Sequence record: PV764938.1
Length of the DNA stretch: 64,000 bases
Direction: 5' to 3' (one strand)
The notes beneath the pieces were generated by a model that was not told the DNA's origin, searched no databases, and worked only from the letters and a program-made list of their open reading frames with translations. The position numbers and the translations under genes were made by a program. Positions 53,969-57,820 of this stretch are shown piece by piece (positions within the stretch are counted from its first letter, which is position 1; every line of letters begins with the position of its first letter).

Positions 53969-54018
53969 AGACCAATAACTATGACGCATGTTACATGCGC
54001 GTTAGTTAGTACGAATAT

Positions 54019-54096
54019 GGACTGGTAGCTCAATTGGTCTAGAGCATCCGACTCTTAATCGGAGGGTTGTGGGTTCGAGTCCCACCCGGTCTACCA
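54019..54096 (+). tRNA. tRNA-Lys(CTT)
   Basis: TCCGA-CTCTTAA-TCGGA; A-CCA. Confidence 0.94.
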
Positions 54097-54146
54097 ACAT
54101 ACTCGGTTTGTAAATAGTGGACACTTTTACAAACCCGGGTAGCCGT

Positions 54147-55250
54147 ATGACACGTCGTAGCAATCTTCTCCGTAGAATCGGAATTAGTAGTTCTGGATCG
54201 AAATTTGGTCCACCGGCTTGGTCTCTTCCAACCGGTGTAGCACCGGATCCCAATAAGATTGCTATCACAGCGGGAACCGGATATGCGGGTTCCACATATA
54301 CTGCGAATTTCGCAACTGGCGGACAATGGTTCGCTGATGGTGTTGCTATTTCCGGTGCAACTGCTCTGACCTATACGATGACAGTCGCCAATGAGGGCAA
54401 AGTCATAACGTATCGTCGAAGCGGCGTTATTTCAAATAGCATTCAAATGTGGTTGTATCCGATGTTGGGAACAACACTCAAATGTTGGTACGACGCAGCT
54501 CTCACAACATCGTTCTCGTATCAATCGGGTATAAACATTTCGAGTTGGGCAAATCGTGTAAGTGGCGCTGTGGCAGCGACGCAGAACACAACTAACAAGT
54601 ATCCGCAATTCACAACTAACGGTCTCCAGAGCGGTTACAACGCTGTTGTTGCCAACGGTACGTTCCAGCAGTTTACAATGGCTTCGGGCTTTGCTCTTGG
54701 TGATCAAACAACGCTTTGCGTTATGAAAACCTCAGACACAAAGACAACCTCTGCAACTAGCTGGTGGGGTAGCCCTGGTATTTGGGGTGACGAAATCAGT
54801 GGTTTCCCTAACGATTTTGCATGGGGGTTCCAAGCTGGTTACCCAATGTTTGGTGCATCCAATACTAAGTTCACATCGACGACAAGGATGGTCGCAGATG
54901 GTCAACCGATGCTGCTGGGTTATACTCGAACCAATACAACGGGTTTGATTAACAACTACTATAATGGTAGTTTCCTGGACTCCGGGACAACGGCCGGTGG
55001 AACTCGTGTTATCAATAACGGAACAACTTCGTTGTTCAATAGTAACTCGATGAACAACGTTGCATCGGGTAATGCCGCATATTTGAGTGCAGCGATTTCG
55101 GATTTCATAATTTTCGACACTGTGCTCAAAGATTCCGATCTTCGCCAAGTTGAAGGTTGCGCTGCATGGCGTTGGGGTCTGCAAAGCAAGCTTCCGGTGG
55201 ATCATCCTTATAGGAATGGTCCTCCAGGTTTTCTTGTAGAAGCTGCTTGA
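54147..55250 (+). CDS. probable virion-surface / tail-fibre-type protein (Ig-like plus LamG/concanavalin-like region)
   Basis: G/T/S/N-rich beta protein; GQWFADGVAISGATALTYT; WYDAA; EGCAAWRWGLQSKLPVDHPY; TAAATA upstream. Confidence 0.7.
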   Translation: MTRRSNLLRRIGISSSGSKFGPPAWSLPTGVAPDPNKIAITAGTGYAGSTYTANFATGGQWFADGVAISGATALTYTMTVANEGKVITYRRSGVISNSIQMWLYPMLGTTLKCWYDAALTTSFSYQSGINISSWANRVSGAVAATQNTTNKYPQFTTNGLQSGYNAVVANGTFQQFTMASGFALGDQTTLCVMKTSDTKTTSATSWWGSPGIWGDEISGFPNDFAWGFQAGYPMFGASNTKFTSTTRMVADGQPMLLGYTRTNTTGLINNYYNGSFLDSGTTAGGTRVINNGTTSLFNSNSMNNVASGNAAYLSAAISDFIIFDTVLKDSDLRQVEGCAAWRWGLQSKLPVDHPYRNGPPGFLVEAA

Positions 55251-55274
55251 CATTAATGGAATTGGTGTTAGAAA
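55247..55274 (+). promoter_or_regulatory. sigma70-type promoter
   Basis: TTGACA-N14-GT-TAGAAA. Confidence 0.6.
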
Positions 55275-55277
55275 CAA

Positions 55278-55495
55278 ACTGCATCGGACGGAAAGTTCGG
55301 TGCAAAGGACTGTATATGCCAGGCGATCTTATCGGACAGGGACGTAATTAACCCCGGGTCCAATTGAGGTAGTTTAAAGGTAAAACGCAGACGGTGACCA
55401 GGGTTCGATCCCCTGGGCGGGCGCTTGCCCGCTACGGTGAAGCCGGAGAGATGCAAGTTTCGAAATCTTGCTCCGATCATAGGATCGTCTGGCGT
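55278..55495 (+). ncRNA. candidate ~220-nt multi-hairpin RNA containing D-arm and T-arm modules
   Basis: TGCATCGGAC/GTTCGGTGCA; D-arm-like TAGTTTAAAGGTAAAAC; CCAGGG-TTCGATC-CCCTGG; CGGGC/GCCCG; GCAAG/CTTGC; CAGACG/CGTCTG. Confidence 0.5.
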
Positions 55496-55508
55496 ATATA
55501 GTTCAAAT

Positions 55509-55586
55509 GGGTGTATGCCTGGAAGTGGGAATCAGGGCTGGCTCTTAACCAGCGACATGTCGGTTCGATCCCGACTGCACTCACCA
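55509..55586 (+). tRNA. tRNA-Lys(CTT)
   Basis: GCTGG-CTCTTAA-CCAGC; A-CCA. Confidence 0.88.
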
Positions 55587-55596
55587 AACGTTTTAT

Positions 55597-55677
55597 GGGC
55601 CGGCTACAAGTGGCTGGTAGAGGGCGTGGCCTTCGGGGCGCTCTTGCGGAGGGACACGCGCTCCGTCTGGTCCACCA
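55597..55677 (+). ncRNA. anticodon-less tRNA mimic with Ala identity elements
   Basis: GGGCCGG/CTGGTCC-A-CCA with G3:U70; CTAC/GTAG D stem; AGGGCG/CGCTCT arm capped by CC-TTCG-GG; GCGGAG/CTCCGT T-like stem. Confidence 0.65.
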
Positions 55678-55740
55678 AATTTCCAAACTTTTCAAATCCT
55701 AGCATTCAGTTGCTAGGCTAAACCGGTTAAGCAACCAAAT

Positions 55741-55816
55741 GGGTGTGTGGCCGAGCGGTTTAGGGACCGGCCTTTTAAGCCGGGCAACGTGGGTTCGAAT
55801 CCCACCGCACCCACCA
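55741..55816 (+). tRNA. tRNA-Lys(TTT)
   Basis: CCGGC-CTTTTAA-GCCGG; A-CCA. Confidence 0.93.
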
Positions 55817-55821
55817 TTTAT

Positions 55822-55895
55822 GTTCGGGTAGGCTAATGTAAAGCCGCTCCCACGAAAGGGAGTGATTGTTGGGTCAAAACCAACCCTGAACACCA
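55822..55895 (+). pseudogene. tRNA-like RNA with 6-nt ACGAAA anticodon loop
   Basis: GTTCGGG/CCTGAAC-A-CCA; CTCCC-ACGAAA-GGGAG; T loop GTCAAAA. Confidence 0.6.
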
Positions 55896-55896
55896 T

Positions 55897-55973
55897 GTCC
55901 TTGTAGCCCAATTGGTAGAGGTACCAGACCGAGATTCTGGGGGTTGTGGGTTCGAATCCCACCTAGGACACCA
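55897..55973 (+). tRNA. tRNA-Leu(GAG), short variable loop, C33
   Basis: CCAGA-CCGAGAT-TCTGG; A-CCA. Confidence 0.8.
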
Positions 55974-55988
55974 AACGATGTGTTTAGT

Positions 55989-56064
55989 CAGGGTAGACGT
56001 AGGGCAAGATTACTACTACCCTTGGAAGGTAGTGAACCCGGGGCGGCGCCGGGTACCCTGACTA
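55989..56064 (+). pseudogene. degenerate tRNA-Pro(TGG)-like RNA inside a 12-bp extended stem
   Basis: CAGGGTA/TACCCTG-A-CTA; CTACC-CTTGGAA-GGTAG; CCCGG/CCGGG T stem with loop GGCGGCG. Confidence 0.6.
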
Positions 56065-56077
56065 AGCACATCAATAT

Positions 56078-56155
56078 GCCCGTGTAGTCCAACCAGGTAG
56101 AGGCGCCGGATTCAAATCCCGGATGTTGTCGGTTCGAGTCCGACCATGGGTACCA
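56078..56155 (+). tRNA. tRNA-Leu(CAA), short variable loop
   Basis: CCGG(A)-TTCAAAT-(C)CCGG; A-CCA. Confidence 0.87.
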
Positions 56156-56163
56156 AATTATAT

Positions 56164-56238
56164 GCTCCTATCGAATAGCGGTCAGTTCGCTACCCTCTCA
56201 AGGTAGAAACACGGGTTCGAATCCCGTTAGGAGTACCA
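56164..56238 (+). tRNA. tRNA-Glu(CTC)
   Basis: CTACC-CTCTCAA-GGTAG; CCA. Confidence 0.92.
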
Positions 56239-56293
56239 ATTATTGACTTCCTGGATTTCCCGGCACTAAAATGCTAGGAAAAACAAGGAGTTA

Positions 56294-56710
56294 GTGATGA
56301 AGCTTGAGGACAAATACGCAGGTGCAATGGGATCCGTTGAGGAGTTCGATTTCGAACACTTTGTTGAGGGTTCCCTGAGAAACCTGATGAAGGATGATGA
56401 TCTTCGTTCGTTCCGTTACGAAGAGGTTATTCTCCGTCCTCGCCATCTGATCATGCTTTGGGAAACACTTCGGACCGCGAAGGCCGAGCTATTCACGGCT
56501 CGTGCACCAATTGTGGTATTCGATGGTCAAAGCTACGAGATCCGATCCATTGCTACCGACACATTCGAGGATCTTCTCAAATACGTTGAGGATCTCACAC
56601 AGAGCAATTCGCGCGTGCTGTTGTACTCGGTCATGCGTAACGGCTTTGTTGACCCCAATACATTTGAGGGTCAAACCCGATACAAAGTCCGTTTCGGTAT
56701 CATCTCTTAA
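56294..56710 (+). CDS. hypothetical protein
   Basis: 138 aa, AAGGAG RBS, TTGACT promoter upstream. Confidence 0.75.
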   Translation: MMKLEDKYAGAMGSVEEFDFEHFVEGSLRNLMKDDDLRSFRYEEVILRPRHLIMLWETLRTAKAELFTARAPIVVFDGQSYEIRSIATDTFEDLLKYVEDLTQSNSRVLLYSVMRNGFVDPNTFEGQTRYKVRFGIIS

Positions 56711-56712
56711 AT

Positions 56713-56786
56713 GCCCATATAGCTCAGTGATAGAGCAACGCTTTCGTACAGCGAAGACTTGGGTTTGATTCCCAGTGTGGGCTCCA
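56713..56786 (+). tRNA. tRNA-Thr(CGT)
   Basis: CGCT-TTCGTAC-AGCG; GCCCATA/TGTGGGC-T-CCA. Confidence 0.85.
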
Positions 56787-56787
56787 T

Positions 56788-56862
56788 GCTCCTATAGTTC
56801 TAGTGGTAAAACAATCCTTTGGTAGGGGACAGTTGGTGGTTCGATTCCACCTAGGAGCACCA
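56788..56862 (+). tRNA. tRNA-Thr(GGT)
   Basis: TCCT-TTGGTAG-GGGA; GCTCCTA/TAGGAGC-A-CCA. Confidence 0.88.
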
Positions 56863-56867
56863 ATTGC

Positions 56868-56921
56868 TTGACACTTTGGTTGCCTGTGTTAGTCTAAGAC
56901 GATAACAGGAGATCGAACATG
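56868..56921 (+). promoter_or_regulatory. promoter plus conserved RBS cassette
   Basis: TTGACA-N14-GT-TAGTCT; GGAGATCGAACATG. Confidence 0.7.
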
Positions 56922-57185
56922 AAGGCAACTGTTTTTTATTGGCTCAAGAAGCCATGCGACGACGCCCTACTCGACAAGGCCTACGACAATGGTCTTGTTG
57001 ATCCCGATTGGGTTAAGAAGGGCGGCCGCACATTCGTCGAATTCAACCGCGAAGGTGAAACTGTCGACGAAATCGTAGCTGGCTGTAAAGCTGATCTCGA
57101 AAAGCACGGCATCGGATTCAAAGACAAGGTTTACGTCTTGGAAATTGATGGTGTGCGGCAAAACGTGGATCCACGCTACTCGTAA
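56919..57185 (+). CDS. small hypothetical protein
   Basis: 88 aa, strong RBS. Confidence 0.75.
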   Translation: MKATVFYWLKKPCDDALLDKAYDNGLVDPDWVKKGGRTFVEFNREGETVDEIVAGCKADLEKHGIGFKDKVYVLEIDGVRQNVDPRYS

Positions 57186-57191
57186 TTTTAT

Positions 57192-57265
57192 GCCCGTGTA
57201 GTTCAATGGTAGAACGCTTGGTTGTGGCCCAGGAGACGTAGGTTCAATTCCTACCGCAGGTACCA
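57192..57265 (+). tRNA. tRNA-His(GTG) lacking G-1, with U72/A73
   Basis: CTTGG-TTGTGGC-CCAGG; base -1 is T; 3' end CGCAGGT-A-CCA. Confidence 0.88.
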
Positions 57266-57283
57266 AATCAGAAGGATCCCGTA

Positions 57284-57820
57284 GTGGATTACGTGAAGAA
57301 ACTAAAAGAAGCACAGGACACCGGAGGCGCAAAAGCTGTCTGCGGAACTGTGCTTCTTGTCATGCAGGGAATCAGTTCAGACAATGGACGGTTCAATCGG
57401 CAAAAGCTTGCTGGAACTCTCGAGAATGATGGCAACAGTGGGTTGCTCGCTGCTTTCGAGTTCTGCGAAATGCTCATGGCCAACACCATCTATTATTCGA
57501 TGCGTGATCGCTCCGATACTCCGTTGAAGCAGATCCGTTGGCTGACAGAGCTGTGCAAAATGCACAAGGACTACCACAGCAAAACAACGCCCGAATTCGT
57601 GTTTATGCTGGACGCCGTTGCCTATGCGATGAACGAGAACATCAAGGATTTCCTCGAGGTCATCGACAAGAAAGTTTCCAAGTTTGGATCCGAAAGCGTC
57701 GGCAGCAAGCACCAGGATAAGATCCACAAACTCGCACAATACTTGATTGAGTTTCAAATCGAAGGCGAACACGTCGAACAGTTGAAGCGACGGGCAATGA
57801 TCGCAAAGCTTGCCAAATAA
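57284..57820 (+). CDS. hypothetical protein, ends RAMIAKLAK
   Basis: 178 aa, AAGGA RBS. Confidence 0.75.
   Translation: MDYVKKLKEAQDTGGAKAVCGTVLLVMQGISSDNGRFNRQKLAGTLENDGNSGLLAAFEFCEMLMANTIYYSMRDRSDTPLKQIRWLTELCKMHKDYHSKTTPEFVFMLDAVAYAMNENIKDFLEVIDKKVSKFGSESVGSKHQDKIHKLAQYLIEFQIEGEHVEQLKRRAMIAKLAK

Follow-up and report, generated by a model that had tools for sequence, protein, structure and literature searches.

A conserved tRNA-shaped RNA with alanine identity marks and no anticodon in the tRNA array of Sinorhizobium phage Phosso and its relatives

Phage tRNA arrays are usually read as codon supply, or as a replacement of host tRNAs that have been cut by defence nucleases. Some RNAs derived from tRNAs work outside ribosomal translation, and the non-proteinogenic tRNA-Gly of Staphylococcus is one of them. 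The bacterial Y RNA YrlA ends in a Ro-binding stem, not in an acceptor end. The tRNA-like domain of tmRNA (SsrA) displays alanine identity through G3:U70, A73 and CCA, has no anticodon, and undergoes tRNA-like processing, features that are found, or in the case of processing predicted, in the RNA described here as well. Another tRNA-derived RNA placed outside ribosomal translation is tRNA-Other from Bacillus cereus (PMC3399842). As for alanine identity, an acceptor helix with G3:U70 and A73 suffices for alanylation by the alanyl-tRNA synthetase (AlaRS), even in minihelices (Francklyn and Schimmel 1989, cited in PMC9976931).

The element that concerns us here is found in Sinorhizobium phage Phosso (PV764938.1), a jumbo phage of 469,473 bp whose host is S. 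meliloti. All positions refer to the window, i.e. the whole stretch of 64,000 nucleotides that was analysed, in which a position equals that of the Phosso record minus 372,000; the portion 54000-57500 is 100% identical to the record. ARAGORN finds 62 tRNAs in Phosso, 41 of which lie within the window, all of them on the + strand and, with few exceptions, ending in a CCA that is encoded, and the phage additionally carries genes for the translation proteins IF-3, S21, RRF, ThrRS, and ClpS. The element is a whole tRNA-shaped RNA gene of 81 nt at 55597-55677 (+), placed between the second copy of tRNA-Lys(CUU) (55509-55586, +) and tRNA-Lys(UUU) (55741-55816, +). Both neighbours were called by ARAGORN and are the same in every relative, the former marking the conserved position, and the Phosso record holds no annotation between them at 55597-55677. 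As in the tRNAs of the array, the leader letters AU stand immediately before +1 and the 3' end is an encoded CCA. The RNA strand reads as the + strand, because of the G:U pairs of the fold. Our proposal, to which we assign a probability of roughly 0.55, is that this element would be a processed, AlaRS-chargeable, non-decoding tRNA mimic, that is, a functional small RNA gene of Phosso-like jumbo phages derived from a tRNA-Ala.

The surrounding array contains several other unusual pieces. At 55822-55895 (+) lies a tRNA-like gene that has not been annotated; its anticodon loop has 6 nt (ACGAAA), its T loop (GUCAAAA) is odd, and its CCA is encoded. It scores 40.5 bits with the Rfam tRNA model and receives no ARAGORN call; in close relatives from sequencing runs this unit is precisely absent, with 55819 joined to 55896. 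A partial tRNA at 55370-55415 (+) keeps the D and T arms, with 5 nt replacing the anticodon arm, and reaches 23 bits, below threshold; no acceptor stem is visible, and the piece is probably what remains of a tRNA. A conserved hairpin lies in the leader of tRNA-Lys(UUU) (55698-55740, +), CCUAGCA-UUCAGU-UGCUAGG, followed by CUAAACCGGUUAAGC, and this hairpin is kept with compensatory changes in the relatives L058 and L056 (we refer to contigs by our own L numbers), also in relatives that do not have the mimic. Outside the window, positions 171983-172058 and 446731-446806 of the Phosso record are occupied by two tRNAs with the anticodon CUA, amber suppressors that ARAGORN labels as Pyl.

The first-pass annotation of this DNA, made by a model from the letters, had described a tRNA mimic of alanine identity at this place, and every letter that it described is present in the sequence, including G1:C72, G2:C71, G3:U70, A73, the encoded CCA, the apical CC-UUCG-GG, and the T loop, which is the 9-nt GGACACGCG. 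Its "perfect tRNA outline" holds for the four-arm cloverleaf and fails beyond it, as there is no linker at positions 8-9, the variable region is a single nucleotide, the acceptor and T stems add up to 13 bp, and neither TPsiC nor an anticodon loop is found. The 5' strand of the acceptor stem, GGGCCGG (55597-55603, +), whose G1, G2 and G3 are invariant, pairs with the 3' strand CUGGUCC (55667-55673) through G1:C72, G2:C71, G3:U70, C4:G69, C5:G68, G6:U67, and G7:C66; the 3' segment (55667-55677, +) continues with the discriminator A and the encoded CCA, and its UCCACCA is invariant in all copies. The D-like arm (55604-55620, +) consists of the stem CUAC/GUAG and the loop AAGUGGCUG, with CAAGUG and UGG kept in all subtypes and compensatory changes at four of its four pairs. 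Position 8 is a C, and the canonical U8 and G18G19 core are absent from the element.

In the place of the anticodon arm there is a longer arm (55621-55644, +) with the sequence AGGGCG-UGG-CC-UUCG-GG-G-CGCUCU, made of a 6-bp stem, five of whose six outer pairs covary, a UGG/G internal loop, the CC:GG pairs, and a UUCG tetraloop. The 7-nt anticodon loop with U33 and the anticodon triplet are absent in all copies, and the three subtypes have instead the tetraloops UUCG, UUAU, and GUAU above the internal loop. A short intron inside an anticodon loop was considered and rejected: once the apical hairpin is taken out, 4-5 nt remain where a loop of 7 nt would be expected, and what is left varies from subtype to subtype. 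The T-like arm (55646-55666, +), GCGGAG-GGACACGCG-CUCCGU, has a 6-bp stem with a G:U at its base and a 9-nt loop lacking the TPsiC consensus; four of the six pairs covary, including a double swap in L063. With this 6-bp T stem, the acceptor and T stack amounts to 13 bp (7+6), compared with the canonical 12 (7+5). In seven of seven sequences, the GUG of the D loop could pair with a (C/U)AC of the T loop through three pairs, a contact made mostly of invariant bases that would possibly give a tRNA-like elbow. Linker nucleotides are nearly absent from the four-way junction, so that the L-shape is not assured.

Homologues of the element, which the first-pass annotation had named as a check, do exist: eight copies, of three diverged subtypes, are spread over related giant-phage genomes and contigs, and each of them lies between the same pair of tRNA-Lys genes. 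The first relative (L008, a 480-kb IMG/VR contig, the same contig as L065) was reached with an exact 20-mer from the T arm, and further giant-phage genomes and contigs through homologues of an endonuclease encoded 2.6 kb downstream of the element. L063 was found in metagenomes with a degenerate DNA pattern, after which copies were collected by BLAST and the covariance model R1, while types B and C were located by their position in the array. Type A comprises Phosso, L050, L051, L055, L008 (=L065), and L063; type B is the 88-nt copy at L053:5641-5728, with the UUAU tetraloop, and type C the 86-nt copy at L056:3684-3769, with the GUAU tetraloop. The replacement arm of all subtypes is built of an outer stem of 5-6 bp, an internal loop (UGG/G, UGG/GG, or UUG/AG), a helix of 2-3 bp, and a tetraloop, and the T loop, of 9 nt in Phosso versus 11 nt in types B and C, keeps ACG. 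Each genome has one copy and no paralogue by BLAST and the R1 model. In a collection of 50,697 phage records searched at the DNA and protein levels, the element matches Phosso alone, its flanks matching tRNA-Lys only. Looser DNA patterns gave 40 chance matches in IMG/VR, 14 in metagenomes, and 7 in cellular genomes, and a second covariance model (R2) rejects all of them; the family is thus not found in cellular genomes by these patterns.

Conservation is what sets the element apart from its surroundings. Type A copies are 92.6-96.3% identical to Phosso in the element, versus 75-94.7% in the flanking tRNAs and 33-75% in the 63-nt downstream spacer, and the neighbouring proteins of L008 show 36-76% identity to those of Phosso. 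Within type A, 74 of the 81 positions are invariant, and the variation is confined to one stem, in the form of compensatory changes. Unguided, RNAalifold yields as consensus a cloverleaf of four arms, with an acceptor stem of 7 bp and a CCA at the 3' end, and covariation occurs in all four stems. In a model-based alignment of seven sequences (A4; L051 is outside the seven), which was fitted to the structure and hence favours the cloverleaf, 98.9% of the cells pair and compensatory changes occur at 16 of the 25 pairs (acceptor three, D four, long arm five, T four). Among 500 shuffles, 0 reached the pairing and covariation observed in A4, and sliding the registers gave nothing near them; in types B and C, the pairs are visible directly in their own sequences. 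The changes in the acceptor stem include 4:69, from C:G to G:C, 6:67, which occurs as G:U, A:U, and C:G, and 7:66, from G:C to A:U. The energies of the single sequence give a different picture, with -30.0 kcal/mol for the cloverleaf versus -35.8 for the minimum-energy fold and a z-score of -0.08 against shuffles, so that thermodynamics alone would not set the element apart from chance. Conservation, unlike the single-sequence energy, confirms that the element is maintained as a real tRNA-shaped RNA and excludes chance.

The element is at the same time accessory, as some close relatives lack exactly this piece and dispense with it. In contigs of close relatives from soil and wastewater libraries, 55588 is joined to 55691 or 55694 through 10-12 other letters; these contigs came from four RNA-library runs and may represent DNA carry-over. 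At the mimic site of another relative (L058:6361-6490), an unrelated insert of about 130 nt occupies the space between both tRNA-Lys genes. Immediately after the type C mimic (L056:3775-3915) there is a tRNA-like sequence with a long insert between acceptor and T arm, which may be an intron-bearing or disrupted tRNA. The contigs with types B and C also encode, just after a tRNA-His gene, proteins of 191-194 aa that match the catalytic core alone of class II HisRS-type synthetases (L053:3012-3587 and L056:2133-2717).

The most constant part of the element is its acceptor end: G1:C72, G2:C71, G3:U70, A73, and CCA are unchanged in all eight copies (L051 included for G3:U70). Unlike G3:U70, the G:U pairs 6:67 and 27:46 swap to A:U or C:G. 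Among the 62 Phosso tRNAs, G3:U70 occurs only in tRNA-Ala(GGC) and tRNA-Ala(UGC), and the last nine nucleotides of the element (3' GGUCCACCA) are those of the Phosso tRNA-Ala(UGC). A relative has at L054:3436-3509 a tRNA-Ala(UGC) that is unusual: its D arm is non-canonical, its first nine bases (GGGCCGGCU) are those of the mimic, and it is possibly the sister of the mimic's ancestor. Because of the invariant identity set, the exclusivity of G3:U70, and the ends matching tRNA-Ala(UGC) genes, the element most likely descends from a tRNA-Ala paralogue and has kept the set read by AlaRS. A six-frame Pfam search finds no AlaRS in Phosso, so charging would fall to the host enzyme, and as the best account of these marks we propose that the host AlaRS would charge the element with alanine. 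The first-pass annotation had spoken of an alanylatable RNA that cannot decode; the tRNA shape, the alanine identity, and the missing anticodon loop stand in all copies, and alanylation is predicted from the sequence. On these grounds, the element is probably loaded with alanine and yet unable to read the genetic code.

For its transcription, processing, charging, and downstream role, we infer the following course. The element would be transcribed together with the surrounding tRNA array, cut by RNase P at G1, and trimmed at its 3' end to the encoded CCA. The resulting RNA would adopt a compact cloverleaf of four helices whose acceptor end copies that of tRNA-Ala (G1:C72, G2:C71, G3:U70, A73), and the host alanyl-tRNA synthetase, which needs the acceptor helix only, would load it with alanine. 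Since a longer closed hairpin replaces the anticodon arm, no codon could be read, and the T loop and the 13-bp acceptor/T stack would also be unlike those of an elongator tRNA. These features, taken with the inability to read codons, make it most likely that the element acts outside decoding as an acceptor-arm mimic. It might serve as a decoy or competitor for a host factor recognising tRNA-Ala or tmRNA-type acceptor ends, or as a dedicated alanine donor for a non-ribosomal reaction. The idea of the first-pass annotation that it could feed a non-ribosomal transferase gains no support, since none of four Pfam transferase families (FemAB, Acetyltransf_6, ATE_C, and the Leu/Phe L/F-transferase) has a match in six-frame searches of Phosso and the 480-kb relative, from which novel folds would escape. 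Its further suggestion of a sink or decoy for EF-Tu, RelA, or tRNA-targeting toxins gains no support either.

Several other explanations have to be weighed against this tRNA mimic. A conserved structured non-coding RNA, in which the tRNA-like shape serves processing or stability only and no amino acid is attached, is the one that we regard as unlikely but deserving serious thought. The invariant D region, internal loop, and T loop would then bind a phage or host protein or RNA, and G3:U70 would be kept for that partner or for folding. The 74 of 81 invariant positions of type A go far beyond what pairing needs, the loop motifs CAAGUG, UGG, and ACG are kept across subtypes, and the T4 tRNA cluster does hold stable RNAs of unknown function that are not of alanine type, all of which would suit such an RNA. 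However, the features that never vary in the acceptor are exactly the determinant set of AlaRS and agree with those of tRNA-Ala in the phage itself, covariation is tolerated at the acceptor pairs next to them, and an unrelated RNA of Aeromonas phages has converged on the same set. A bistable switch, which we hold to be distinctly improbable, would have the 5' strand pair either with the 3' strand, forming the cloverleaf, or with the D region, forming a hairpin that leaves the 3' tail GUCUGGUCCACCA single-stranded, and would thus control processing, charging, or the pairing of the tail with a target. In type A, the cloverleaf is 1-6 kcal/mol less stable than the competing fold, and the minimum-energy fold contains an 8-bp hairpin between 3-10 and 15-22 (55599-55618), with which neither the acceptor stem nor the D stem is compatible. 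Five pairs of this hairpin can be aligned; across subtypes they are 94% paired, three of them with compensatory changes, in an alignment not fitted to the hairpin. Type B keeps the hairpin with compensatory changes, and type C has a shifted 5-bp version. This conservation of the competing hairpin means that the acceptor stem may not always form. Against a switch, the minimum-energy fold of type B already has the acceptor stem, the D-stem pairs, which are exclusive with the hairpin, covary too, the tail has no known target, and the UGG of the D region may be kept for other reasons.

Even further from the evidence is a rescue RNA that works like a minimal tmRNA, or one that counteracts host trans-translation; it would receive alanine, associate with host SmpB, and be delivered to stalled ribosomes. 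We consider this reading highly improbable even though alanine identity and a missing anticodon are common to the element and the tRNA-like domain of tmRNA, and ARAGORN finds no tmRNA in Phosso. Even at E<=10, the element has no match among the Rfam tmRNA models, its T loop is not the canonical one kept by tmRNA, its 81 nt are fully used by four helices with neither a tag reading frame nor a pseudoknot, and SmpB (PF01668) is absent in Phosso and the 480-kb relative. The rescue role that the first-pass annotation had offered therefore finds no backing, the resemblance to tmRNA ending at the acceptor end with no SmpB of the phage to accompany it. A tmRNA or split tmRNA in the strict sense was rejected because no model matches, a tag is absent, and the T loop is not canonical. 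What we find hardly credible is a tRNA-Ala pseudogene in decay, or a cloverleaf that arose by chance in spacer DNA. It is true that the array has other degenerate tRNA-like pieces (55370-55415, 55822-55892) and that the single-sequence fold is no better than shuffles, but conservation equals or exceeds that of the flanking tRNAs amid diverged spacers, compensatory changes occur in all four stems, and the same unusual architecture recurs in three diverged subtypes. The drift of a dead tRNA-Ala, which the first-pass annotation had named as what would overturn its reading, is refuted by this same conservation, covariation, and occurrence in three subtypes.

The unrelated RNA mentioned above, from Aeromonas phages, is an unannotated look-alike of 74 nt in the tRNA cluster of phage Aeh1 (NC_005260, 108791-108864, -), of alanine type and without an anticodon, conserved in 14 Aeromonas phage records (Aeh1 plus 13 others; for instance L108:12792-12865). 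It shares with the Phosso element G1-G3:U70, A73, CCA, a closed short "anticodon" loop (5 nt in Aeh1), and a non-canonical T loop (CGGAAAU in Aeh1), and differs from it in its length of 74 nt, its canonical linkers, and its 7-nt T loop. With the family model R2 it scores 20.8 bits, no higher than ordinary tRNA-Ala genes do, which provides no evidence of homology and makes it an independent analogue, not a detectable homologue, of the Phosso element. The same logic in a non-homologous RNA suggests a recurring strategy. In a tentative and rather doubtful extension of our proposal, tRNA mimics that are charged with alanine and have no anticodon would have arisen repeatedly in phages, once among rhizobial jumbo phages and separately among T4-like Aeromonas phages, and would make up an effector RNA class of their own. 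These mimics might divert or block a host factor reading tRNA-Ala or tmRNA-type ends (a defence nuclease or transferase, SmpB, or EF-Tu) or feed alanine to a non-ribosomal reaction, and the mimic of the Phosso family might also be bistable, with the hairpin gating its acceptor end.

A conserved member of a tRNA array with charging identity but no decoding points to a use of aminoacyl-RNA, or to tRNA mimicry, outside translation, and could lead to a host target or a principle of counter-defence that is new. Our literature search found no paper on Phosso or on an anticodon-less alanine-type tRNA mimic in phages. The element receives no ARAGORN call and no Rfam match at gathering thresholds or at E<=10, and the tRNA model RF00005 gives no match to it at E<=10 in either an 801-nt or a whole-genome search. 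Since both tRNA finders and Rfam overlook it, genes of this sort do not show up in current phage annotations. The element is a new, unannotated RNA family within a known kind, that of the tRNA-like non-decoding RNAs.

Within this kind, the closest comparisons place the element as follows. tmRNA, with its canonical T loop, its lack of a D stem, its pseudoknots and tag reading frame, its length of about 300-400 nt, and its partner SmpB, contrasts with an element of 81 nt that is closed by a hairpin, has a D stem, and bears a non-canonical T loop. Whereas YrlA has its Ro-binding stem, the element has free acceptor ends with CCA, and no Rfam family other than the tRNA neighbours matches at the element. 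T4 rnaC (species 1) and rnaD (species 2) are, like the element, non-tRNA stable RNAs of unknown function that are co-oriented within a phage tRNA cluster; unlike it, they measure 139 and 119 nt and lack an acceptor end of alanine type, and they resemble it in neither sequence nor fold. tRNA-Other and the Staphylococcus tRNA-Gly resemble the element, as we propose it, in standing outside ribosomal translation, where they serve regulation or non-ribosomal amino-acid transfer, but they are cellular, have an anticodon loop and a near-canonical cloverleaf, and show Lys/Trp-like and Gly identities. Finally, the alanine minihelices and microhelices (Francklyn and Schimmel 1989, cited in PMC9976931) are laboratory constructs, whereas the element is a gene that occurs in nature, is conserved, and has two arms more than they do.
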